Shown here: positions 1-64,000 of the stretch, piece by piece | Numbering within the stretch: the stretch's first letter is position 1 | Layout: the number at the start of each line of letters is the position of its first letter | From: Histomonas meleagridis 2922-C6/04-290x | Lineage: Eukaryota > Protista > Parabasalia | Length of the DNA stretch: 64,000 nt | NCBI GenBank assembly: GCA_020184695.1 | Contig: JAANOX010000098.1 | Location: forward strand, 248,001-312,000 | Direction: 5' to 3' | Made by a program: the position numbers and the translations under genes | Notes under the pieces: model-generated | Database searches by the model: none | Seen by the model: only the letters and a program-made list of their open reading frames with translations | Told to the model about the DNA's origin: nothing

Positions 1-3000
1 TTGTATTTTATCTACTTGTGTTGATTGTAATGATAATTCAGTCATTGTTTTAGATATATTATCCATTGCTTCTTTAGCACGTTGTTCTTTTTCTTTGACT
101 TGTACTTGTTGTGATTCTGCTTCTATTGATAATTGATTTACTTTATTCGATACAGAATTTAATCTAAATAAACCATCACTTAAAAACTTTTTACGTGTTA
201 TTAATGATTCTGATTTATCTTTAGATAATTTAATAAATGAAGATATCATTAATTGAAAATCAGAAGTTTTCATTTCTAAGTTTTTATGGATTTTAGCAAA
301 TGGAAGTTTTGATATTGTTTCATCATTAATTTCATATTTATTTAATATAAATGGTATCATGTCATTTAATGTATTCTCTGTATATTCATTAACATATAAA
401 ATTGTACATTGTGACTTTAATAAAGGTTGAGATTTCAATGTAATTTGATATGTAGGTGATCTCGGATCAATTATAAAAACAATTTTGAAGTTATTTTGTA
501 TTAATTTTATGAATTCATCATATGAAATATCATTTAATTGTTGTAAAATAGCTTTTAATTCTTCTGGCGTATATAAATTAGAAGGTAAATGATTCGTTAA
601 AAATGAATTTATATATTCATAAAAATTATCATCAATAATTTGATATTCTTCAATACATAAAATAGTTAATTGATTTTGTATTGTAGCATTAGATAAACAT
701 TCTTTTAAATCATTAATAAAATGTCGAATTGAATAACCATCGAAAGTTGATAAATTATAAAATTTACTTTTCATTGCATAAGTTGTTAATTTTAATACAT
801 CTTTAACATTACAACCAGTGATAGCTATTAATAACAAATGATTATTCGGTAATGTTAAAGCTCTATTAATTTGTGATGAAAGTTTTATAATATTTGATTG
901 TATAAATATTTCAAGTGAACCAATTTCTCTTTCATAATTTATCAAAACAGAATTTAAATATTTCTTAATTGTAGAAATATCTGTTTTATATAATTTATTA
1001 TCATTTTGATTAAATGATGTATATACACCCATCTTACCTGAAATATATTTAGTTAAAATTTGATTAAATTCTTTTTGTAATTTACTTGAGTTTAATTGAT
1101 CACTAAATATTCGACATGCTTCATATAAAAGGATTTGATTTGGTTGATCATTAGAATATCTTTCTAAGCCAATTATCCATTTAGTTAAATCTTTTGGAGT
1201 GAAACCATTTCGTTGTAAAAATTGATCATAAATATTAACAATTGATTTCGATAATTCTAAACAAACATTTGGTGAAAATTCTTCGTTTTTACTTAATATT
1301 TGTGAGATATATTCATTATAAATAAATCGAAGATTTTCACTTGATAAATAATCAATTACTATAATTCTAAATTGTGATATTACTCGATTGGATATTGGTT
1401 GAATTGATTCATTCGGATTAATAGTTGCTACAATATTAATATTCTTTAATTCAACCCATTCTAAACTTTCATTCATAAATCCATTTAATTGACATAATTG
1501 TCGTATAAAACTATGTAATTCAACTGTATCGAATTTATCCGATTTAGGATTTTGTATATTTTTAAAGAATAATGTTAAGTTTTTATTAGTTTTAGGTTTC
1601 ATTATAATACCATTCGAACTTGGTGATACTGAACATAATTCATTTAACATCGAAATAACTTGTTTTGAAGTTGTTAATGAATTACAATATATTATTTCAA
1701 TATCATTTTGATAAAGTTTTTGTATTAATGTAGTTTTACCACAACCTTTAGGACCAATAATTAAAAGATTTTCATTTGTATATTTGATTGCTGATGTATA
1801 ATATTTCATTGATTCTGGCGTAATTACAAAAGGAGGTTTTAATGTATTAAATTCATTTTCTTTAAGTTTCTCATATTCAAATTGTTGAATTTTATCATTT
1901 ATATAATCATTTAATAAAACATTTTTATTTTGGAAATTAATTTTACATCCACAAACTTTACTTGCATGATTTATATAATCATATGCAAATTTCTCTTGTG
2001 ATGAAGTTGATAATAAAGAAGAACAAGAACGTGCTATACCTAAAATGAATGGTATAGGTTGAACTATGTTATTAACATGAGGTAAAATATTCCTAAGTAT
2101 TTGATAATCAGAGAAATTAAATACGAAATTTGTTGAATATTTTTTAATGATTTTAAATGCTAAAGGAATTAATGTATTAAATAATTTCTTAAATTCATTA
2201 CTTCTTTCAAATAAAATATTCGGAAATGTTAATTCGATATTAAAATCATCTTTGTTAACAAATAAGACGCCCATTCGAGAAACAGTTGCAGGAGAAGCGA
2301 ATTTTAATGAATTAGTTTCAAAGATAAATTTAACATTTTTGTCAAATTGAATTCGTTCACCTGTAGGTAATGTTAATAATCGATTATCATCTAAAACAGA
2401 ATTTAATGATTCGATCCAAACAGGATCTACATCACCATCACAAACTATGAAACCAATTTCATTCGATGGTAATCTTGAAGCAGCTCTTGCAGCTTTAATT
2501 AATGTACCATCAGTCCATTCTCTTGTATCGACGTCAATTGAACCCATTAAACTTTCGATAGGTATAGCTTTAGGTATTATATGCCAAATCGTAGTTTTCT
2601 TTCCATATTCAGTTAAAGCTTTAGCTAAAACTTCCCATAAAGTTGATTTACCACAACATGAAGGACCTACAATTACTACGCCAGTTCTATGTTGTATTAA
2701 TTGATATAACAAAGAAATTTTTGTAAGTTGATTTTCATTTTTATCATATTTTAATTTTTCTAATATGTTTAATATAATTGGTTTTAATTCATTGTCATTA
2801 TTTTGATTAATATTTTCATTAATTTGAAATGTGTCATTAACTATATCCATAAATAATCGTTTATCTTTATCATTAAGTTTCCCTAAAGTATCAAATAATA
2901 ATGCGCGTATAATAATTTGTTCTTCACTTTCATTATTCGTATTATTTAATAACCATTGTCCTGCCATATTTAATACTGTTTTTTGTGCTCTTAAACCCCA

Positions 3001-6000
3001 ATCATAATGTTTTTGTTTAGATAAAAGTTGATCAGATAAATTAAATATTGTAACAATTCGTTGAGCTAATTTTTCACTATCATGAAACCCTTCACTATAA
3101 AGCATTACTTGTGCTATTAATTGTTTATCTGGTGATGACATTGATATTGATCTAAAAAGTGCTTTCAAGTTATTTGGTAATTTAGAACGTCCTTGATAAC
3201 CTTTACTTGCAGGATTTAATGTAATAAATATTCCTGACTTCAAATTTAATGGAATATTTCGATTTAATAGACTTACTGAGTTTTGTTTCTTTAAAATTGC
3301 TGTTTGAATTGCTTGAATTTGTTGTGATACTGCAGAAAGTACTAATTCATCTAAACGATTAAATTCATCAAAACATCCCCATGCACCACATTGTATTAAA
3401 CCTATAAATATTCGACAAATAGATTTAATATCAATTCCATCTCCACAATTAAATACTAATACTTGTCGACCCATAGCTTGTCCTAAAGCTTTTACTGATT
3501 CTGTTTTACCTGTCCCTGCAGGCCCATAAGGATTACCAGCAAATCCTAAATGCATACCTTCACATAAAGTGGACCAACATAAATCAGTTAATGGTGTATG
3601 AACAAGTTTTTGAGAATTACCTTGATATTCATAACCATAATCGAATGTAGCGTCACACATTCTAATTATACATTTATCATCTTCATAATAATATTTAAAT
3701 CTACGAATCCATTCGAATGATGTTAATTCATTTATGTTCTTTTTCTTTAAATCTTTAATGATCGAATTATAATTAACTAAATCCATAATTAAACATTTAA
3801 TTAAATGCGTTTCACTTAAATCATTTGTTTCAACTTTAATTGTTGATTTATTATTTTCATCTATTTCTAATGGATTTGTTCTAAATTTGGATAATTTTAA
3901 TAATTTGTTTTGATAATTATTTAATAATTCATTTAATGAATTGTTTTTTATTGCATTTTCTGTATCTTTTGTAAATTTTATTCCTTTGCCTACTTGTACT
4001 ATTTGTGATGGATAATTTTTAGTGGTGAATTCTTCATTATTAACATAATCTTTTAATAATAATGTTAAAGTTTCTTGCATTTGATTACAAAGTTCATTTA
4101 ACCAATTTTCGACATTTTGATTTGCTAAAATTGGTTCTTTCAAAAATATCTTTTCATTTATTGCTGACATATATGCAACAATTTGGTTTTCTGTATTTAT
4201 ATCAATAGTTTGAATTCCTTGGAACAAATTCTTTAAATGCGTTTGTACAATTGAAGGATTCTCTTTAACTTTACCAAGAATTTCTAATAAATCATAATCA
4301 CCAATAAAATATAATCTTGGAAATCCTTGTCTTTTATTTTCCAGAAATGTAATTAAAGCTGATTGACAATTATCTAAACCATCCAAAATATTTTTTAATG
4401 TTGAAACTATTTCAAACTTATTTAATAATGATGTAACTTGTGGATCTTTCTTAATATCAAACATAATCCCTTTAAATTGTGAGTCAAGATTATTAAATTT
4501 TTCAATATGTGAAGGTAAAGCACCAGATGAAAATATTGGTGCTAAATGTAACCATTTACGTTGAATTTGATTAAGCAACAAAAGTGCCTCGTGTAAAGTA
4601 TCGAATTTTGACGTCCACAATTGAATTTCATTTTCAAAAGAGCTAGCGTACTGTAAAGTAGTCAATGATTGAATCGTCGATTGAATGTCGTTAATTTGAG
4701 TTAATAAATCTTTCCATTCTTTAATGATAGGAACACCTTGTTGTTCAGTTAAAATAAAATCACTATGCATATTCCATTCACGTATTTCTCTTAAAGCAGA
4801 TCTAATAGTAGCCTCACCTTTCGCTTTTTCATTTAATTGTTTAATTAATTGTACATTTTGATGTATTTGAGCTGAATAATTTAATATATTTTCTAATTTT
4901 AACTCATTAATTTTCATAGGCTTTGGATATTGTAATATAATACCTAATTCTTCCCAATTTTCAGATGTCCAATTATCACCTCTAACTAATATAATATCAG
5001 GATAATAATTAATTAAGTCATGAATCTTCTCTAATAAATATATTTGTATATCTGATTGTTCAACTTTTAATGTGTATTCATTCCAATTCTCTAAAAAGTC
5101 TTTTAAGTCATAGATATGTGTTCGATATGTTAACCATTCTTCTTTACCTATTTCTTCTAATTCCGTTTGCCATTTATCTAATAATAACCAAGTCGATTCA
5201 AATGATTTTAATGAATTTGTTATATCAATAATTTCTTGGAATTTTCTTTGGTTCTTAATACCAAATCCTTTTTCTTCTTCGAGAATTAATTCTTTCTCTT
5301 TCTCAAAGTCTTCTAAACCTATTCTTGTTTCTTTTACTATTTGTATTGCATGTTCAACTTCTTTTTGATTCTTAAAATCGACATTTTTTGGTTTTCTTTC
5401 TTCCCATTTTAATTTAAATTGACTTATTCGACGTTGGAAATCTTCTGCTTTTTGACTTGTTAAAGTTCGTAAAGTTTTAAGTTGTTGTTGAACAATTTTA
5501 CTTTGATCTGTTAATGTGCCTTTAAATATCATCCAATGACTTGAAATAGAATCGATTTGGAATTGTAATGATTGTCGAATTTGTGGGTCATGAATCATTA
5601 ATAAATTTGATTTATTATGTATTAATTTAAATGTCTTTTGGAATTCATTTATTTTGTTGTTTAATCCCATTATAGTTTCACGGACATTTTTAACTTCTTC
5701 ACTTGTTTGAACATTAGTTTGTATTAATGATAATGAATTATTTATGAAATCCATTACATTCGATATATCATTTTCTAATGATTTACGTAATAAATTACAT
5801 ATCGAGCGTTTATATTCATTAATTAATCGACGAAATGAACTTTTTATTAATACATATGAAACTGTAATATATTCGAATTTTTCTTGATCGGGAATTTGAT
5901 CTATTTCTGATTCATGTAAACTAATTGAGTTTAAATTTGTTAAGAATTGATTCGGTTCAGTAATTTTTTGTTGTAATAATTCATCAAAGTCATTAACTTG

Positions 6001-11900: not shown

Positions 11901-13894
11901 GGAAATGGTGTTTTGTCTTTAGGATAATTATTTAATAAATCAGGTATAGGTGATTCATAAAGATATTGAAGAATTACATTTAAAGCTTTCGAAGAAGGTT
12001 TATCTAAATTAAACTTTTTAATATGAACATTAGAATGAAATATTAATTTTATAATTAAAGTTTCATAATATTTAACAGGTATTAATTTAACATATTTTTC
12101 AGTTAATTTTTTCGAATAATTTTCATCAATTTTAGTTCCAACTATTAAAGCTAAAGGATCTAAAATATATTTTGTTATTAATTGATATCTTTGACTAATT
12201 AAATAATGATTATTATTTTCTAATAATAATAAATAACATAATCTTTCATATACTTCGATACTATATTTTAATAATTCCAAATCATTTTCTTTTATTAATG
12301 ATTCCATTAATATTTTATGTGTAAATAAATAATATGCATTAAAACCATTAGTTAAATAATCCGAATTATTACTTTTCCAGAATTTCATTTTTAATAAATA
12401 TGTTTCAATGATATTTAACATTTGTTGTTTGTTTTGTTTTAAGAAATTACTTTTCATGAAATTATATTTATTTAATTTTTCTTTCTTATCTTCAGTAAGA
12501 ATTAATTGTATATCTTCAATAGAATCCAACAAACATAATAAACATACTAAATATGAAGGATTATGTGTCATTATGAATTTAGAAAACTTTAATTCATCTG
12601 TTGGATGTTTAATTGCACCAACGACAATTTTATTACGAATATCTTTATTAAGAAATAGAAATGGAGTTTTATCAGCCAACAATGGATTAAATAAATCTTT
12701 TTCATTCGAATAATTCGTTAACAATTGAATAAGTCTCAAACAAATTTCGGGATAATTTAATGCATTTGAACTAATTTTAGCTAAAATTCGATTAACAAAT
12801 TCTTCAAGATATTTTATAGCTTCTTCAAACGTAGGTCGATTTTGAATTTCTTTATTATTTAATCTTAATGAATCAATGATATAACTTAAATTATTCGAGT
12901 TTCCTGTTTCAATAATCTCTTTAACGGAATTATCGATTGATAACTCAAGTAATTTCTCAAATATTCCATCATCAATTGAACGAATGTATAAAAGATTTTG
13001 ATTATTCCAATAAAAATCTTTTGGTACTTCTTCAATGAACTTTTCAAGATGATTCTCAATTGACAATTTAAAGAAATAATAATAATCAGAAATGCTTTCA
13101 TATGGTTTTATCTTTTTCCTACCATATACAACATGAATAACTTTTTGGGGATTAATTTTCCCAATATTTAATGAACGAAATGCTTCTTTAAATTTTCGTT
13201 GAAGTTCTTCATATTTCGGGTCCCCTTTTTTACAAAGAATTGCTTTGAATTCGCTATCTTTAAAGATATTCTTAAATGGTTTAATAATATTTGTATAAAG
13301 TAAATTTAATTTGGTATCATTCGCATCAATAGAATTAATGAATTCATTCGCTTTTTTGTACTCTTGAATTACCATTAACAAAGAGGAAATTTTGTTCGGA
13401 TTAAATGGAAGATTACAATAACATTGTGTAAAATCTTTCCCAACTAATTGCTTATAATGATACTTTCCGCTGAGGATTTTGGTGATCTTTTCTTCTTGTG
13501 TAAAAGTTGAAAGTTCTTCCATCGGAATTCTAGCTTGTAAAAAAATTTCCAATTTATCATCTGGAATGCATGTGTACGCCAGGTCAGAAAAATGATGTTG
13601 ATATGGATTTGAGATAATGTTATAAGCAATTGTACTAAATCGAGGATCAGTTTCGCAAAGCCTTGAGATTTCTTGGAAAATAGGTAAATGATATTGTTTA
13701 TTTGAGTCAACAAATCTAATGACTTGTTCGTTATTCATTTGCGCAAGAACTGTTCTGATATTTTCTGAATTTGAAAAAAATCGGGAAATATGATCTTGAT
13801 ATTCAAGATCATTCCCAAGCTCAATAAATCTATCCCAATCCTTTGTTGTTAAAATCTTTTCAAAAACGCCTGCCGAAAGCTCGTTGCTTGACAT
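8915..13894 (-). CDS. Large hypothetical protein (1659 aa, predicted helical, acidic C-terminus)
   Basis: Uninterrupted 4.98-kb ORF with ATG start; no family recognised. Confidence 0.85.
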   Translation of the reverse strand: MSSNELSAGVFEKILTTKDWDRFIELGNDLEYQDHISRFFSNSENIRTVLAQMNNEQVIRFVDSNKQYHLPIFQEISRLCETDPRFSTIAYNIISNPYQHHFSDLAYTCIPDDKLEIFLQARIPMEELSTFTQEEKITKILSGKYHYKQLVGKDFTQCYCNLPFNPNKISSLLMVIQEYKKANEFINSIDANDTKLNLLYTNIIKPFKNIFKDSEFKAILCKKGDPKYEELQRKFKEAFRSLNIGKINPQKVIHVVYGRKKIKPYESISDYYYFFKLSIENHLEKFIEEVPKDFYWNNQNLLYIRSIDDGIFEKLLELSIDNSVKEIIETGNSNNLSYIIDSLRLNNKEIQNRPTFEEAIKYLEEFVNRILAKISSNALNYPEICLRLIQLLTNYSNEKDLFNPLLADKTPFLFLNKDIRNKIVVGAIKHPTDELKFSKFIMTHNPSYLVCLLCLLDSIEDIQLILTEDKKEKLNKYNFMKSNFLKQNKQQMLNIIETYLLKMKFWKSNNSDYLTNGFNAYYLFTHKILMESLIKENDLELLKYSIEVYERLCYLLLLENNNHYLISQRYQLITKYILDPLALIVGTKIDENYSKKLTEKYVKLIPVKYYETLIIKLIFHSNVHIKKFNLDKPSSKALNVILQYLYESPIPDLLNNYPKDKTPFPEISTILYNQNENNTLISHNWKECIKYKLNKCNVNKVAEVCNEFLTTDIIHISYNQPKTEIIEFQEIYYNISCECWLELIKFVNNYIKIYNSKLYNTNLTIMMMSLQRLIRGISSYLFYTKVTLEKPTIETNFYLYKDVNYKLLYNPAYFPLLKEFNEWNEILYTNENYEIVKEFYKFNFYNDKAPKVINEFDGIIFNINFVRHEESNNISYEKEFHNSILNVINQKLINDIKKTDNTTYDFYIIQNKFKQLPYIKNNKEYYQNALIDFNYQKKFNDVEELKKMSSYGFCDISFLRFIEAIDKCDAKEIYTSYLSMDTLLSYNKIYNSFNKLPLRQNVNYDKTKIKSTITELIDLLLNDLMTDDLKKQFGNKDVTYKQIYQWIKNLSNLTYRINGKLNNLKKFCKINIKQANDRIGENDKTFFKAIYLSEDIDQILIAMTSPVFSASKDILYEKNDNYTLIVTQRILPKIIHQILQQNNMKIFDRFLESIISLCLNPLIVGEPIPKESFDFLSFLSKSNSTINVKKYIIANLCYYLILKFARNDITNINLDVIFDIFNQCYKNNSNEISAFFCQIINLSMCNKLKSKNPIFQEMFSNSPNTYIVSYYKPIPNGFNLIIPKEFQIVYEKIIDLYILPNLISNNNNIIELTIAILTKSDLFSVLPKKIVPFLVKGLNEFNPSEDNSTFLRFATIFIIKNREFYETCFESYKNMLNKLKTYAIQICKENINNKTDDEPETFINLCTTYDIILNTIQKPFNKFQDKNLMKLFSMFCRDLSKVLDNYRPLILSYEFNILRSNCIALGDESFEKCVTSDDPEIALTEFINCINNHHIDFVYYLPEPLQKIFNILSEHFNEKHTLQIANLPMILQNNMQLVYMLQNSVHKNMPKNCTEEEYIDIIGKLGIFADYFIPVEEVEHTQQQNNTKTSEKFIRERDDVFSDVASMTIPISNLMLSDESDVDVDHPNDDVILSDNAVENEVVNDENEEFNDAQEFFNF

Positions 13895-13956
13895 TTTAAT
13901 TATTCACTTTTTGAATTATGTGAATCAATTCAATTTATAAACAACATTTTGAGAAA

Positions 13957-13964
13957 AAACCGTT
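13957..13964 (-). promoter_or_regulatory. M3-like core promoter motif (AACGGTTT)
   Basis: Matches the Trichomonas M3 consensus [AGT][AG]C[GC]G[TC]T[TAG], about 60 nt upstream of ATG 13894. Confidence 0.45.
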
Positions 13965-13965
13965 G

Positions 13966-15364
13966 TCATAAATACTGAAAATCATTAGAGGATGTGTCAT
14001 ATTCTAAAAAATTATTTTTAACTGCTATATGAAGTACTATTCCGAATTATTAAAACAAATGAATATTTTTTGTATTGACATCAATTCCTTCTTTATATAA
14101 AATATATGTCACAAGTTCAATATTTCCTGATTCTGATGCAAATGGCAAAATATTTTTTGGAATGTGAATATTTTGAAGGAAATATTGAACGAGATATAAA
14201 TTTACATTTCTTGTTGATTTATTTTATGTTATCAGCATTAACATTAATCCCTTTTTCTTCCAATAATACTAAAATTTCATAATTTCCACTTATGATGCAA
14301 AAGCATCGCAAATCATTAATGTCACTTTATTTTATATTTGCATTCAATCGCTTGTAAATGTTGATTTGCTTTTATTTCCGTAAACTTGATAATTTTGTAC
14401 ATTATTTTTATGTGATTGATTATCATAAAGATATCATTCCTATGAAACAAAATTGCTGTTTCATATGCATCTTTGATGTATTTGTTACATTTGAATTATT
14501 CATAAGTAAATATTTAAAACATTTAACTGAAGAAAAAAATGCTGCATAATCAATTAATGAAACATTTTTTTTATTAATAAATGAACATCTCATAAAGTGT
14601 TGGTTCAATTGTTTGGTTAATATCAAAATTTGTTTGTGATGATATTTCTTGAAGTTTTTCTATTTCATCATTCCGAATTATTTGCGCATTTTCACTTGGA
14701 TTAACTCCTTCTTGAATATACTTCTTATGAAGCTCCCAATCATTCTTGGAAAGTTCTTCATAATGATCACGAAAGTATCTTTCTATTGGATCATTTCCAT
14801 TAAACCAAAATGGCAAATGATTTTGGTTTTAATTTTCTTCTTTTGCTTTATAATGAGAAAAATATTTTGAATTAATATTTTTATCAATTAGATTTTGTTC
14901 AATCATTTTCTCGATTAAATAATATGATTCTTGTGTTATTTGTATATATACGTTTGATAAAAATTGAAATTAGTTTAAAAATATTTTGATTAAATTCTTC
15001 TTTAGTTTGAAGTTCTTTTAAAAAATTTATGTAAATCTCAAATACTTGCTTTGGTGTGAAAATGCATTATAAATGATGTTACTTATAATGGTAAAAATGT
15101 GTAGGGAATATTTGAATTGAATAATTTCAATATTTTTTTAACGGACGGCTGGAAGTTTTCTTCTGTTAAACTGAGTATCGCTTTCTCAAGTTCAATTAGT
15201 AATTTCAAGCAGGATAATAAATTATTCAAATTTTTATCTCCTGTGTTTGTGATGGTGGTATCATCATTAGGCATGTGATTAATTAAGTATGTGGTTGTAT
15301 TATTCCAACTATTTTTCAAAACGTGGTGTACTTCCATTCGAACTGATTTGATATGTAGTGGCAT
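13966..15364 (-). pseudogene. DUF3447-ankyrin pseudogene (locus D) with a 15-nt minimal spacer
   Basis: ORF fragments 15364-15083 (LIELEKAILSLTEENFQPSV, like the N-termini of the paralogs), 14816-14574 (KNDWELHKKYIQEGVNP..IIRNDEIEKLQEI) and 14626-14423 (SLIDYAAFFSSVKCFKYLL) are joined by frameshifts. Downstream: ...ESGNIELVTYILYKEGIDVNTKNIHLF**FGIVLHIAVKNN. Confidence 0.8.
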
Positions 15365-15458
15365 TACATCAACAAATATGGAAAATTAAAACAATATGAA
15401 TTGAAAAGATAAAAAATTTTTATTATATTTAAAAAAAAGTTACAAACAAATTTGGATT

Positions 15459-16856
15459 TTACGCAATGTTTTGATTTCCAAGAAATTTAGCCACACCGCT
15501 TCTGTATACTTTAACCATTAATGCGGTGAAAAGTGTGTAAAACACCCAAATCAAAATTGCTGTAATTATTGTTGAGTATAAAAATGAAAGTATATTATAT
15601 GACAATGATCCATCTGTTGTTAAACCATAAAACACATACACAGAATCACCAAATATCACACTTAACATTAGCTGATATAAATCAATGAAGTTCTGAGTAG
15701 TCTCCATAAAGAATCCGAACAAAAACACACAAACAAACATTAACCCCATTAAAACTGGCGCAAAAATAGAAATCAAAAAACATAGTTTCTTAAATCCTTG
15801 TCTAATTACAAGTGCAACTGCATAACACCTTGGAAGAAATGTTAGCCATTGAATTGTGCTGGCCGATACAAATAAACCGGCAAAACCAAACAAAATCATT
15901 GAATTTAACGTTGGAAACTGAGTCATCGTCTTCGAGCATTGAATTAGGAACACGCTCGAAATGATCATGATGACATTAGAGAAAAAATTGAATATTTGCC
16001 AGAAGCCAACTGAATAATGAAATTGCTCATATGTACTTAAGTCTTTATACTTAGGATTGGTTCGAAGTAATTGATGATGAGAATTAAACGATTTGACAAG
16101 AAGTGATAATGTGGTAATAAAATAAACAACAGAGATTTCTATTAAACGTACACCAGAAATAAGAGTGGGTTTGGTAAATGAAATGCTTTCTGGTGAAAAA
16201 AATTCAATGATATCCGATTTAGAACAACTTGAGCGAACAAGTGAAGACGAGCCTTTGAAAAGAAAACTGCCTTTTTGAAGTTCTACATGAAGCTGGGCTT
16301 CCCATTGTGTACAACCAGATATTTCAGAATCATTATTTGAGATTGTGAATTCACTGGAAAAAACAATCGCTGAGACATGTCGAAAAAGTTCCTGAGAAAT
16401 GTTGATTGGAGTGTTAGTTGTTGTGCCGTTTAACCATTCGTAAGTCGTTACAACTGTTTGACTTGAATTAGTAAATGCAAAATGATGGAATGAATCTGTT
16501 TTTAGATCGATAAGTGATTCAGAAAATTTATCAATCGCAGAATAAAGATCATCGAATGAAGAGAATAAAAAATCATCTTCTTTTGGGAAAAGATAGTCAT
16601 TAAACATTTCTCTTATTTGATAAATGTTAGTTGTTGACCTGAGAATTAAAGTTGCATAAACATATAACACATATATGAATTGGGCTAAATGAAATAATAA
16701 TGGCCATGGTGGAGAATAATGTTCACGCCATTTTTCAAAATGACGTGATCTGAAATCAAATAACGAAAAATGAGAGAAATGAGAAACGAAATGAATTCGA
16801 ATTCCCATTTCCTTGATTTTTGTAAAATCTAACGAGGATGAATTAGGGTGCCCCAA
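15459..16856 (-). CDS. Mucolipin/TRPML-like (polycystin family) cation channel
   Basis: N-terminal PPWPLLFHLAQFIYV (mucolipin KPWKL.LQI.K-like), large luminal loop, C-terminal multi-TM block, and pore-like QLMLSVIFGDSVYVFY. Confidence 0.7.
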   Translation of the reverse strand: MGHPNSSSLDFTKIKEMGIRIHFVSHFSHFSLFDFRSRHFEKWREHYSPPWPLLFHLAQFIYVLYVYATLILRSTTNIYQIREMFNDYLFPKEDDFLFSSFDDLYSAIDKFSESLIDLKTDSFHHFAFTNSSQTVVTTYEWLNGTTTNTPINISQELFRHVSAIVFSSEFTISNNDSEISGCTQWEAQLHVELQKGSFLFKGSSSLVRSSCSKSDIIEFFSPESISFTKPTLISGVRLIEISVVYFITTLSLLVKSFNSHHQLLRTNPKYKDLSTYEQFHYSVGFWQIFNFFSNVIMIISSVFLIQCSKTMTQFPTLNSMILFGFAGLFVSASTIQWLTFLPRCYAVALVIRQGFKKLCFLISIFAPVLMGLMFVCVFLFGFFMETTQNFIDLYQLMLSVIFGDSVYVFYGLTTDGSLSYNILSFLYSTIITAILIWVFYTLFTALMVKVYRSGVAKFLGNQNIA

Positions 16857-59121: not shown

Positions 59122-59885
59122 TTTTCGTTGTTTTGTTATTATAGAATAAAGATTTTGTGTTTTAATTTTTTTATTGACTAAATGTTTTATGAAGAAAAGG
59201 GAAAACATTTGCAGAAGAATGAAAAGTGAAAATTTTTTAAATAAAAAAATTATTCATAAATTGTGCTTTAAAGCAAACAAATTTAACCATTTCGTTATTT
59301 AATACCTTTGTTTTGTGCAAACAAAGAAATTTTATTGTAATAAATAACTAATATTTATATTCCATATGAAGATAGCTTGTCATTAAGGGTAGTGCTGCAA
59401 TAATTTCGAATAATCAGCTTGGTGGTTAAATGCCGATTGTTTTCACAAATTCAAATATCTCACTAAAAATCGAATATAGTTCATCAGAAACATCTTTAAA
59501 TATGATTATTTTTGATGTTCTTTCTAATTATAAAAAAATATTATTATTCATAAACCTTTTATTTCTAAAGGAAATTCGAGTGATTATTCCAATTTTTTAT
59601 CTAATGAAACACATCAATACCATTATAATTGCTTTATTTGCACCACATTAATTTTGATTTGGGTTCTCATTCTCAATATAATTAATCAATTGCACAAAAA
59701 TAGAACATTCGAATGTTCGAAAAGTGGTCTTATATCTGGTCGGCCTCAAGGGCACCGACACTTTTTGTTTACCCAAAATTTAGAGGACTGCCCCAATAAC
59801 TGCCGTCGATACGATAGGAGCTAACTCCAAGTTTTGTAAATCACTGAAAACACATCGCAAAATTTTAAATTATATTGCAATAAAG

Positions 59886-60842
59886 ATGTTTCTTTTCTTG
59901 TTCACTTTGTCACTTAGTGATACTATAAATATTGGTGATCAAAAATTTGGTTCATTACTAATTCATTCAAATGATCAAATACTTACAAATTTCGAAGATG
60001 GACATGAATTATTTTTAATGTTTTCTGAAAATATGCAAAAACATATCAAGTTTACTATTGCAAAGAATGATTCACGTACTTATACACCAAATATGATTGA
60101 CAATGCTTATGCTTTTTCATTTATAGAAAATACATCAATAGAATTCATAAATTACAATAATTCTGTCTACCTCCAATACTGGGTTATTCCTTCTACCATC
60201 TGTCCCACCCATGCGCTTTTTTTCATGGCAGGTAAAGAGATCAAATACAAGTTTGATGCTAAAGATGATTCTTTTTTACTTTGTCTTTTCTCACCTTTAA
60301 GTAATCTCCATAAAGTCGAGCTTGAATTTGGTTTTACATCTGTTGAAGGCACTGCAATCTCTTCACTTTACACATCTCGTTCAACATCCACTCCAACGCG
60401 TACGTGTCGCAAGCGAAAATGTGAAGCTGATGTCACCAGCTCATTTTTCATTGCTTATAATAAGAGTGGGTCAGGTGGAAGTCTTTATTTCGAGCGCGAG
60501 AATGATGACGATGACGAAGAAATTCGCGATGAATATTATTCTAAGTGTGAGCACTCGTTCTTTGCTCACGTTGGTTATGATGACGGAGTTTCCGTTCAAG
60601 CGCTCGAAGGCGAAGAAGCGAAATACAAATGCAAACAAGCGAAAAGTGACAAAGATAAAAAAGTTGATGAATACGAGCCAATAATATTTATTGGGCTCTC
60701 AGTGATAATATTAGTTGCGGTAGTTGTGTTCTCTGTAATTATATTAAGAAAATGTATGTCAAGAAGAAAGAACTATAGTATGAAAATCGATAATGAAGAT
60801 GAAGACGATGACGAATACCAACAAGTGTTGATAAATCTTTAG
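59886..60842 (+). CDS. Type I single-pass membrane protein (signal peptide, ectodomain, TM, short acidic tail)
   Basis: N-terminal MFLFLFTLSLS; TM IIFIGLSVIILVAVVVFSVIIL followed by RKCMSRRK. Confidence 0.85.
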   Translation: MFLFLFTLSLSDTINIGDQKFGSLLIHSNDQILTNFEDGHELFLMFSENMQKHIKFTIAKNDSRTYTPNMIDNAYAFSFIENTSIEFINYNNSVYLQYWVIPSTICPTHALFFMAGKEIKYKFDAKDDSFLLCLFSPLSNLHKVELEFGFTSVEGTAISSLYTSRSTSTPTRTCRKRKCEADVTSSFFIAYNKSGSGGSLYFERENDDDDEEIRDEYYSKCEHSFFAHVGYDDGVSVQALEGEEAKYKCKQAKSDKDKKVDEYEPIIFIGLSVIILVAVVVFSVIILRKCMSRRKNYSMKIDNEDEDDDEYQQVLINL

Positions 60843-61073
60843 CTGAGAAAACTTTTGATTTTAACTGTTTAATTTGATTTTAATTAAAATTCAGATTTGT
60901 TTTTGTCATTGGCTCATGTTCATGTAATTTGAAATTGAATGATCTCATAGAAATTATTACGTGGTTTATATTGCTTTGAAAATAAAAAATTTGATAACAT
61001 GATTTAAAAAGTGACTGTTTAAACACAATTGCAATTCACCATATAGAAAATCGAAGTGAAAATTTAGTTAGAT

Positions 61074-62039: not shown

Positions 62040-62114
62040 TAATACGAGCAACTCAAATATTACCAATATTAATTGAATTTCGTCGATTGTGTTATGTTCA
62101 TAAAAAAATTGCAC

Positions 62115-63638
62115 ATGTTTTCGATTTTACTAGCTATAACATATTCCATTGAATCGCTTGGAATTGATCAACTCCCTGAATTATTTGCAAGTGTTGATAT
62201 AAGTATTGGAAAAGCAACAGTCGACTATCCTCTTGTGGATAATTTATACAAAAGTTTAAATAATCAAGATAAAGAACCAGATGTAATTCAAATTAATGCA
62301 AATAAAAAAAATTTATTCATGCCTAATAGCTTATTGCTTTCATACACAAATTCATGGGAACCAGGTGATACAATTGGTGTATTTATAAAAGGAAATATAT
62401 CCAATGTTCCATTTACCACGACATCAAATAGTTTTTTTAATTCATCAAAAAAGTATAGATTTGTTTATGGTACATTATTAGATGTATATTGCTATTATCC
62501 ATATAATTTAAAAGCAAATTTTTCGGAGTTGTTAGTTCAAGATACAAGCAATCAAAATTTGATGAATCAAAAAAAATTCGATTTTATGCAAGGACAAAAA
62601 CTTTCCTGGATGGAACCGCCTGGATACCAGTATTGTAGCTTGGCACTTACGCATAAAATGACATTCTTAAATTTAAACATACATGGTAATTCCATATTCA
62701 ACACAAAATTTTCTTCAGTTCAATCAATTTTTATAAATGGAATAAAACATAATGGAACATTTGATATATTTAATGGAACAGCATACATTAATAATGGAAC
62801 GCTTCCGCTTGAAAATTGGAACATTACGAAACTTTGTAATTTTAACGATACCGAAACAATTGACTGCGAAATGGTATTATTTCCACAAACATTTGAAGAA
62901 GCAATTGAATTAATTATTATAGCATCTGAGAAAACTTATAATATAACACTTCCAATTGAGGAATTACAATCAGGTTATTCATATACATATTACTATGATT
63001 TAAACCTTAGCACCAATACATTCACGCAGAGTAATACATTAACAAACAGTAATACGTTCGCACAAAGTAATACATTCACGCAGAGTAATACATTTTCACG
63101 TAGTAATTCATTTAGTAAATCAAATACATATTTACAGAGTGATGCATATGGAAACATAACATATTCCATTACATTATCAGCATTTACAATTGCAGAGACA
63201 TTTATTATCGATAATTCATTTCTAACGAATTCGTATTCTTTAACATATATAAATTTAACATATATTTTTACGCAAATGGAATTTATTTATTACGAATATA
63301 CAATTATTCAATATACTATATATCATTCATATTATTTAAAATATTATTTTAATATCGAAACGAATGATGTCTCCAACCAAAATGATAATCAAACGACAGT
63401 TATTGTTGTTTCTGTTGTTTGTGTTATTATTGTCGTATTAATTATATTATTAATTATTGTTTTATTAATTCGTAAACGAAATTCCAAAGAAAACGAAACA
63501 AATTCCGAAAATGAACTTACAAAATCAGAAGAAACTGAAAATGCAAATAATTTCTCAGCAGGAATCAACATTCCGCATGTTGAAGAAGATCCATTTGCTA
63601 AAGATTTCAAGGAAGATAACATCATTGATCACATTTAA
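62115..63638 (+). CDS. Surface protein: signal peptide + fimbrillin/Mfa-like domain + FTQSNTF stalk + TM + acidic DPF tail
   Basis: MFSILLAITYS; WEPGDTIGVF..SNVPF..DVYCYYPYN..QDTSNQ..DFMQG..LALTHKMTFLNLNI..VLFPQT..LQSGYSYTYYYDL; repeats (F/L)TQSNT; TM VIVVSVVCVIIVVLIILLIIVLLI; tail EEDPFAKDFKED. Confidence 0.85.
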   Translation: MFSILLAITYSIESLGIDQLPELFASVDISIGKATVDYPLVDNLYKSLNNQDKEPDVIQINANKKNLFMPNSLLLSYTNSWEPGDTIGVFIKGNISNVPFTTTSNSFFNSSKKYRFVYGTLLDVYCYYPYNLKANFSELLVQDTSNQNLMNQKKFDFMQGQKLSWMEPPGYQYCSLALTHKMTFLNLNIHGNSIFNTKFSSVQSIFINGIKHNGTFDIFNGTAYINNGTLPLENWNITKLCNFNDTETIDCEMVLFPQTFEEAIELIIIASEKTYNITLPIEELQSGYSYTYYYDLNLSTNTFTQSNTLTNSNTFAQSNTFTQSNTFSRSNSFSKSNTYLQSDAYGNITYSITLSAFTIAETFIIDNSFLTNSYSLTYINLTYIFTQMEFIYYEYTIIQYTIYHSYYLKYYFNIETNDVSNQNDNQTTVIVVSVVCVIIVVLIILLIIVLLIRKRNSKENETNSENELTKSEETENANNFSAGINIPHVEEDPFAKDFKEDNIIDHI

Positions 63639-64000
63639 TTAAATATTATATATATGTATATGTCATTTAGCGATGTTTCATGATGCTCAATGTTTTTTAT
63701 ATGAGAAAACAAAGCATTTCATGGAAATATCTGTTTTTGGCGTTTACGTAATGATTTTGAATACATTTTCATATTTAGTAAATAAAATATATAAATTTGT
63801 GATTATATTTCAATAAAGAATTTCATTTGAAATTTTCATTTGGTTAAATTAAGATGAAAAAAAAATTGAAAAAAGTTTTCTTGAAATTTTTTTATAGAAA
63901 CATTTACATTTTATCAATTATTTATTCTTTTTCATGAAGTATTTCATATATTTTATCATCATAATTTTCTGCTGCATACATAATTGCTGTCCAAAATATG

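Follow-up and report, generated by a model that had tools for sequence, protein, structure and literature searches.

Type V pilins have been described as unique to the class Bacteroidia (PMC13655056). They are lipoproteins whose anchor strand is cut at an arginine, after which the C-terminal donor strand fills the groove of the next subunit; in the known type V pili the acceptor groove opens only once the anchor strand has been cut off (PMC13655056). The type V subunits of Porphyromonas gingivalis have a known role in adhesion to bacteria and host molecules (PMC13655056). Here, we describe a gene of the poultry parasite Histomonas meleagridis (Parabasalia, Dientamoebidae) for a 514-amino-acid (aa) predicted surface protein that carries a fimbrillin-like head of the type V pilin superfamily. 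The gene is located in a stretch of 64,000 nucleotides (nt), positions 248,001 to 312,000 of the forward strand of contig JAANOX010000098.1 (assembly GCA_020184695.1), which is referred to below as the window. H. meleagridis relies on gut bacteria, and neither a treatment nor a prophylaxis against it is available (PMC8529796).

The described bacterial proteins closest to the head are Bacteroides BACOVA_04980 (Protein Data Bank, PDB, entry 3ufi) and BACUNI_00621 (4k4k), short Mfa_like_1 "putative cell adhesion proteins" that belong to the same Pfam family (PF13149) and have the same two-lobed fold and head size. Common to these proteins and the head are the motifs W..GD.IG, YYPY, DF[LM], F.H.M, G....GTF, [IL]..PQ and G..Y.Y. 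Bacterial proteins of the 3ufi/4k4k type are lipoproteins of ~280-330 aa that carry a lipobox cysteine, an arginine behind the anchor strand and, at the end of their C-terminal strand, the motif I..W, whereas the protein encoded in the window has a predicted eukaryotic signal peptide and a 40-aa N-terminal extension, is without this cysteine and this arginine, and runs on into a stalk, a transmembrane (TM) helix and a tail. FimA and Mfa1-Mfa4 of P. gingivalis have the same superfamily fold but match the head much more distantly (Z 8-12) than 3ufi and 4k4k do; they polymerise by protease-triggered strand exchange, and the features needed for it are missing in the window protein.

Among eukaryotes, the BspA-like and "bacterial Ig-like" proteins of trichomonads and Histomonas are built to the same design, with an adhesin head of bacterial type mounted on a parabasalid type I membrane anchor, and both families are discussed as adhesion proteins (PMC8529796, PMC2843621). 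Their H. meleagridis members share a homologous stalk, membrane-proximal module, TM helix and tail with the window protein, at 33-37% identity over the C-terminal third; their heads consist of leucine-rich repeats or Ig-like domains, whereas the head described here is a predicted pilin-like beta-sandwich. Since parabasalid surface proteins are already known to have received bacterial adhesin domains by lateral transfer, what is new is the type of head, together with an apparently non-polymerising variant of the type V pilin family, and not a new kind of system. Full-text searches found no literature linking fimbrillin, Mfa1 or PF13149 to Trichomonas, Tritrichomonas, Dientamoeba, Histomonas or parabasalids, and the H. 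meleagridis genome and surfaceome papers make no mention of a fimbrillin-like domain. The protein places a type V pilin fold in a eukaryote, rebuilt for another secretion route and another anchor, apparently without the ability to polymerise, and enlarges the set of bacterial adhesin domains displayed by parabasalid parasites.

The Head Belongs to the Fimbrillin Family

The motifs from which an earlier note on this DNA had recognized a fimbrillin domain are all present, in order, in one frame of the forward strand (aa 88-303, window positions 62355-63002): WEPGDTIGVF (aa 88-97, from 62355), SNVPF, DVYCYYPYN (130-138), QDTSNQ (149-154), DFMQG (163-167), LALTHKMTFLNLNI (183-196), MVLFPQT (260-266) and LQSGYSYTYYYDL (291-303, ending at 63002). 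The span that had been proposed for the domain, 62180-63010, encloses them. When the excised head (window 62280-63035) was used as the query of a Pfam scan, PF13149 was matched at aa ~85-309 with an E-value of 1e-27 and 98.2 bits against a gathering cut-off of 27, over profile positions 5-237 of 246. PF13149 was not reported by a Pfam scan of the whole protein, for which Pfam and NCBIfam gave only weak, generic single-pass TM families. Apparently, the low-complexity stalk and the TM region suppress the match in the whole protein, and they may equally thwart automated annotation of the entire family. Both this gene and any missed paralogues should come to light if the genome is re-annotated with scans of domain-sized pieces.

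Sequence searches of the PDB with a single-sequence query retrieved 3ufi (E 3e-7) and 4k4k (E 1e-3), with E-values of 3e-11 and 1e-6, respectively, when a two-sequence profile was used. In the ESM Atlas, 20 of the 20 nearest clusters carry PF13149, and they come from Bacteroidota; a word search with the head alone gave no match. The resemblance of the head to the fimbrillin family is far beyond chance.

A first AlphaFold model, calculated from a six-sequence alignment that was too shallow, had a predicted local distance difference test (pLDDT) value of 54. The second model, calculated from a 103-sequence alignment, had a mean pLDDT of 78 (81-98 over model residues 70-295) and a predicted template modelling (pTM) score of 0.75. 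The type V pilin superfamily is defined by N- and C-terminal beta-sandwich domains in a transthyretin-like arrangement, and structural comparison places the head in it. The best 35 PDB matches of this model in Foldseek are all Bacteroidales fimbrial or "cell adhesion" proteins, with a best E-value of 1e-14. With VIA-align, the best 26 matches all belong to the type V pilin superfamily (Z 22.1 to 8.1), and the first unrelated fold follows at Z 6.6. The highest scores were obtained for 3ufi (Z 22.1, root-mean-square deviation 2.9 over 249 residues) and 4k4k (Z 19.8, 2.6 over 234 residues); FimA, Mfa1, Mfa2, Mfa3 and Mfa4 scored Z 8-12. Both the Pfam and the structural comparison therefore bear out the fimbrillin assignment of the earlier note. 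Its wording "Mfa1-like" holds for family and fold but not for the nearest relatives, since the Mfa1 shaft pilin reaches only Z 8.4: as modelled, the head has a type V pilin fold closest to the short Mfa_like_1 proteins rather than to Mfa1.

Relatives and Origin of the Head

A profile search of 1.84 billion representative proteins, with E-values up to 0.001, gave 293 matches, of which 150 were listed. Among the 150 listed, close resemblance to the window protein is seen only in P0001 and P0129, both of them stalk-bearing and both from metagenomes of one study. P0001 (E 5e-155) matches over its whole length, including the stalk, TM helix and tail; it scores 83 bits with PF13149. P0129 (E 6e-33) has the start of the stalk and is then truncated.

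A lipobox-like cysteine is found near the start of 129 of the 149 listed relatives other than P0001, many of which have typical Bacteroidota lipoprotein signals, and five metagenomic loci retrieved by a pattern search likewise encode lipoproteins. One of these loci (L002) lies within a row of five open reading frames (ORFs) of the same strand and similar size; the Pfam check covered the matched ORF alone.

The three stalk-bearing copies (the window protein, P0001 and P0129) group together as one clade in a maximum-likelihood tree of 90 heads, with an SH-aLRT (Shimodaira-Hasegawa-like approximate likelihood ratio test) support of 99 and a stem of 1.03 changes per site. As the stalk-bearing copies form a single clade and are 36-41% identical to one another, the fusion of head and stalk predates their divergence and the transfer is old. 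The lateral transfer from bacteria that the earlier note had suggested is supported by this clade, by the distribution of the features (a lipobox-like cysteine in most listed relatives, a protist-type stalk in only two other proteins) and by the fully host-like composition of the gene described below. Taken together, the sequences make a solid case that the head was acquired once, long ago, from a Bacteroidota-type bacterium.

Because the tree gives no bacterial sister and the bacterial matches come without library taxonomy, the donor can be named no closer than a Bacteroidota-type lipoprotein family. Phylogeny with bacterial homologues thus yields a well-supported stalk-bearing clade but does not lead to a donor lineage, and identification of the donor from the tree was rejected, the protist clade sitting on a long stem next to no specific bacterial sister. 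Scans of bacterial genome contigs, with the two-sequence alignment or with a single bacterial match as the query, gave no confirmed relative and no named donor genome. Assignment of the three stalk-bearing copies to three host species was also rejected as unproven, since the two copies from metagenomes might be paralogues within a single organism.

At the locus of P0129 (331-1314 of L007, on a contig with 38% GC), the head is followed by two stalk repeats and the frame ends without a TM helix; P0129 is a truncated copy or else a secreted form.

Loss and Replacement of Pilus-Assembly Features

The features used in type V pilus assembly were compared in an alignment of 103 rows, 100 of them bacterial and three being the stalk-bearing copies. 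The lipobox cysteine, present in 99% of the bacterial rows, is absent from all three stalk-bearing copies, which have Ala, Leu and Val at this position; together with the eukaryotic-type signal peptide predicted in the window protein, this supports the replacement of the lipoprotein signal that the earlier note had proposed. For the arginine of the cleavage site (93% of the bacterial rows), the window protein and P0129 have a gap; P0001 retains the residue. At the two positions of the C-terminal I..W motif, conserved in 89% and 95% of the bacterial rows, stalk residues are aligned instead. The first 100 residues of the window protein contain no arginine at all; two lysines, located 15 aa upstream of the conserved tryptophan, might still allow a lysine-specific cut. 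The PF13149 match of the window protein stops nine positions before the end of the profile, while four of five scanned bacterial relatives reach position 246. The chain runs for 200 residues past the head through the TM helix and so provides no free C-terminal donor strand. Since the lipobox cysteine and the arginine site are missing and the stalk replaces the C-terminal I..W motif, it seems unlikely that the window protein forms a pilus.

A bacterial fusion offers a partial parallel. L004 (644-2365) encodes a metagenomic bacterial lipoprotein with an N-terminal Mfa_like_1 module (profile positions 6-234, compared with 5-237 in the window protein) followed, as in the window protein, by another module, in this case a C-terminal DNA/RNA non-specific endonuclease (PF01223). 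The two heads are truncated at the same point, so that a head of this kind can function as a module even when its last strand is missing. The carrier of L004 is a bacterial lipoprotein and the partner an enzyme domain, whereas the partner in the window protein is a membrane anchor.

A protein that still polymerised or docked by donor-strand exchange, as a pilus-like fibre or by capturing Bacteroidota pili through their donor strands, would have to do so with a C-terminus that is tethered by the TM helix and hence is not a free donor strand, and with an acceptor groove that in known type V pili opens only after a cut in the anchor strand (PMC13655056), for which the first 100 residues contain no arginine. 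Strand exchange strikes us as very improbable for these reasons, even though the fold and the position of the anchor strand are retained, the protein's own C-terminal strand motif is missing with a stalk repeat modelled in its place only at low confidence, P0001 has an arginine at the cleavage site and the parasite lives among Bacteroidota. In a related scheme, the parasite would use as a receptor a disarmed copy of a pilus subunit of its own prey, which accepts the free C-terminal donor strand of Bacteroidota pilins or of cell-surface fimbrillin-like lipoproteins and locks the bacteria on by donor-strand complementation, with the DPF-type tail driving uptake. Such a receptor could exist because the stalk repeat sits only loosely at the position of the last strand; we consider it, if anything, slightly less probable still. 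We infer instead that the head stays a closed, self-complemented monomer, held off the membrane on a probably glycosylated stalk, because there is no cysteine for lipidation and no arginine site, the stalk occupies the place of the donor-strand motif and the C-terminus is tethered.

A Bacterial Head on a Parasite Cassette

The signal peptide, stalk and TM anchor that the earlier note had proposed are present, as judged by the sequence itself, an 18-nt repeat and hydropathy (Table 1), and the N-termini of P0001 and P0129 are likewise hydrophobic. All elements of the parabasalid surface cassette, i.e., the stalk repeat, the Tyr-rich module, the single TM helix and the tail, are found in the window protein. 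The hexapeptide repeat of the stalk occurs in P0001-P0008, including named H. meleagridis proteins. The membrane-proximal module corresponded to no Pfam family in our Pfam scans. The E-E-D-P-F motif of the tail is invariant in P0001 and present in P0003. From the order of the elements, a type I topology is predicted, in which the head faces outward.

Over its C-terminal 35-39%, the protein is matched by BspA-like and "bacterial Ig-like" surface proteins of H. meleagridis with heads of other kinds; such cassette-only matches had E-values of 1e-21 to 2e-5 for H. meleagridis proteins and of 2e-29 for metagenomic BspA-like proteins. Since the C-terminal third is homologous to that of differently headed surface proteins, the parasite mounts alternative heads of several kinds on a common cassette, and the fimbrillin head is one of them. 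The gene would thus encode a type I membrane protein made of two parts of different origin, in which the acquired head (aa ~63-305) is fused to the parasite's own signal peptide before it and to its stalk, module, TM helix and tail after it.

Ten N-glycosylation sequons are found from aa 101 to 304, nine of them inside the head. Two cysteines, Cys248 and Cys258 (62835-62867), are kept in P0001 and flank a loop that is missing from bacterial relatives in the six-sequence alignment; a W-N-I-T sequon just upstream of them is conserved in all three stalk-bearing copies. The cysteines and the sequon may represent a eukaryote-specific disulfide and glycan.

Table 1. Features of the fimbrillin-head gene and its product (window positions)
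Feature	Position	Strand	Evidence
Probable transcription start region	62053-62067	+	starts of RNA-like contigs and upstream zero depth; initiator-like TCA
Coding sequence of the 514-aa surface protein	62094-63638	+	ORF and translation; identical ORF in GCA_020184695.1
Predicted eukaryotic signal peptide, aa 1-~20, basic start and 11-residue hydrophobic core	62094-62153	+	sequence, hydropathy
N-terminal extension, aa 21-62, no bacterial counterpart	62154-62279	+	alignment; model pLDDT 47-52
Anchor-strand counterpart (beta-1, aa ~63-71) and following loop without Arg	62280-62345	+	model strand 48-53; alignment to conserved bacterial strand
Fimbrillin-like (PF13149 Mfa_like_1) two-lobed beta-sandwich head, type V pilin fold (as modelled)	62346-63020	+	Pfam, model, Foldseek, VIA-align, ESM Atlas
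Stalk of hexapeptide repeats, T/S-F-T-Q-S-N type	63009-63146	+	tandem repeat 63015-63112, 18-nt period, 5.4 copies
Membrane-proximal module, Tyr/Thr/Ile-rich, aa ~352-435	63147-63398	+	conserved among cassette carriers (P0001 alignment; P0002-P0008 cassette-only matches)
Single TM helix, aa 436-459, then Arg-Lys-Arg	63399-63470	+	hydropathy maximum 4.1 at aa 441-459
Cytoplasmic tail, 55 aa, acidic E-E-D-P-F motif (aa 497-501, 63582-63596)	63471-63635	+	sequence; conserved motif

The Gene Resides in the Parasite Genome and Is Probably Transcribed

The ORF is intact from its first ATG to the stop codon at 63636-63638, and the same frame is open from a TTG at 62073 (62073-63638). An intact ORF on L008, a contig of GCA_020184695.1, is 100% identical to it (2036-3580, reverse strand). 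The window is AT-rich and contains long uninterrupted eukaryotic genes; flanking the fimbrillin-head gene are genes for a Rab GTPase, which adjoins it, a protein kinase and a PolQ-like helicase whose named relatives are all parabasalid. No second fimbrillin-like ORF was found within the 64-kb window, the neighbours being the Rab GTPase and unrelated eukaryotic genes and not a fimbrial operon. With a GC content of 0.27, a third-codon-position GC content (GC3) of 0.20 and its codon use, the gene falls within the values found for its neighbours. In two runs, single DNA contigs extend from the Rab gene across the intergenic region into the fimbrillin-head gene, of which they include the first 590 nt. 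An exact copy of the adjoining Rab protein is encoded at the locus of the identical ORF in GCA_020184695.1, and the assembly also carries a protein that bears the name H. meleagridis at NCBI. The gene belongs to the genome of H. meleagridis.

In runs X1 and X2, contigs cover gene bodies only, with zero depth in intergenic regions, and an X1 contig contains a run of 22 A at 60851, 12 nt past the stop codon of the neighbouring ORF 59784-60839, which indicates a very short 3' untranslated region (UTR) for this ORF. Because of the coverage restricted to gene bodies and the poly(A) end, the 22-A run being the best sign, these two runs behave as RNA. Over the fimbrillin-head gene, their contigs start at 62056 or 62067 and extend to 63857, and the depth in the upstream intergenic region is zero. 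A TCA at 62053-62055, 39 nt upstream of the ATG, is presumably an initiator, by what is generally known of parabasalid promoters. The evidence that the gene is expressed is good but not final, since the type of the runs is a guess.

In the public annotation of GCA_020184695.1, the adjoining Rab and kinase genes are called and no gene is called at the fimbrillin-head ORF. The exact 514-aa protein was not found in a collection of ~15 billion proteins, and neither protein search, including that of the 1.84 billion representatives, gave a near-identical match. While the missing gene call and the missing protein could suggest that the ORF is a bacterial contaminant, an assembly chimera or a dead relic rather than a working parasite gene, the identical intact ORF on L008, the base composition and codon use of the neighbouring genes, the in-frame junction of the head with a parabasalid-specific stalk, TM helix and tail, the contigs of two DNA runs that link the head to the Rab gene and the RNA-like contigs that cover the gene make an artefact or relic barely credible. 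Contamination, chimeric assembly and a pseudogene were dropped on the host-like composition, the intact ORF, the Rab-linking contigs and the RNA-like coverage.

Copies, Alleles and Proposed Function

The DNA depth over 62520-63425 is 2-4 times that of single-copy sequence. Within 62656-62765, a second contig reaches about half the depth, in the two DNA runs as well as in the two RNA-like ones; it has five differences (62686, 62709, 62722, 62725 and 62735), all inside 50 nt. Four of the five change the protein (G198V, F206L, Q210P and S211L), within a 14-residue stretch in a loop of the head. The second contig represents either a divergent allele or a recent paralogue, which is probably also transcribed, and the raised depth over the head together with this copy fits a small gene family.

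Such variation, along with the identity of only 36-41% among the three stalk-bearing copies, could mean that the head is mainly a variable coat protein, one of several diverging copies that serve antigenic diversity or decoy display and bind no specific ligand. On the other hand, the core motifs of the fold are kept at this level of identity, a pattern that agrees with a maintained structure whose loops vary, like that of adhesins. A coat function is compatible with an adhesin function, and neither excludes the other; as the main role of the head, we consider it unlikely.

We favour as probable the reading in which a laterally acquired Mfa_like_1 head on a parasite cassette acts as a non-polymerising, monomeric adhesin or receptor. 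Most likely, it would serve to bind a ligand carried by gut bacteria or by the caecal mucosa. Both sources of ligand are plausible, given that H. meleagridis has its habitat among the bacteria of the caecum and is dependent on them. DPF motifs bind endocytic adaptors in other eukaryotes, and the motif in the tail resembles them; this DPF-type motif may couple binding to uptake. For Histomonas, the protein is a candidate for making contact with bacteria or host at the cell surface.

Several observations weigh against this interpretation. The protist clade is not nested within a named bacterial group, no sister to it is resolved, and the name Bacteroidota, the bacterial matches carrying no library taxonomy, is taken from the PDB relatives, the Atlas clusters and the lipoprotein features. 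Because bacterial fimbrillins made up the alignment behind the model, the fold match and the sequence homology are not independent of each other, and both the anchor strand and the last strand have low confidence (pLDDT ~50-67). In the model, the first stalk repeat forms the last strand of the head at such low confidence, and the occupant of the C-terminal strand position is uncertain. P0001 keeps the arginine at the cleavage position, a residue associated with assembly in the bacterial proteins. Runs X1 and X2 are labelled "RNA? (a guess)", their RNA nature being deduced from the coverage pattern. Finally, since the gene is not called, published proteome and surfaceome studies could not detect the protein if they were searched on the public protein set.

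Further Observations at the 3' End of the Gene

In the bin 63577-63727, the depth in the DNA runs is ~13,000-16,800 as compared with ~500-620 at the single-copy flanks, a ~26-fold difference. Positions 63577-63635 encode E-E-D-P-F-A-K-D-F of the tail, and the remainder, to 63727, belongs to the beginning of the 3' UTR. Many loci share this bin, wholly or in part, in nearly identical form. Further downstream, just before an ankyrin gene, the X1 and X2 contigs connect 63857 to 63902 through 9-10 other letters, a form that is not seen in the contigs of the DNA runs.

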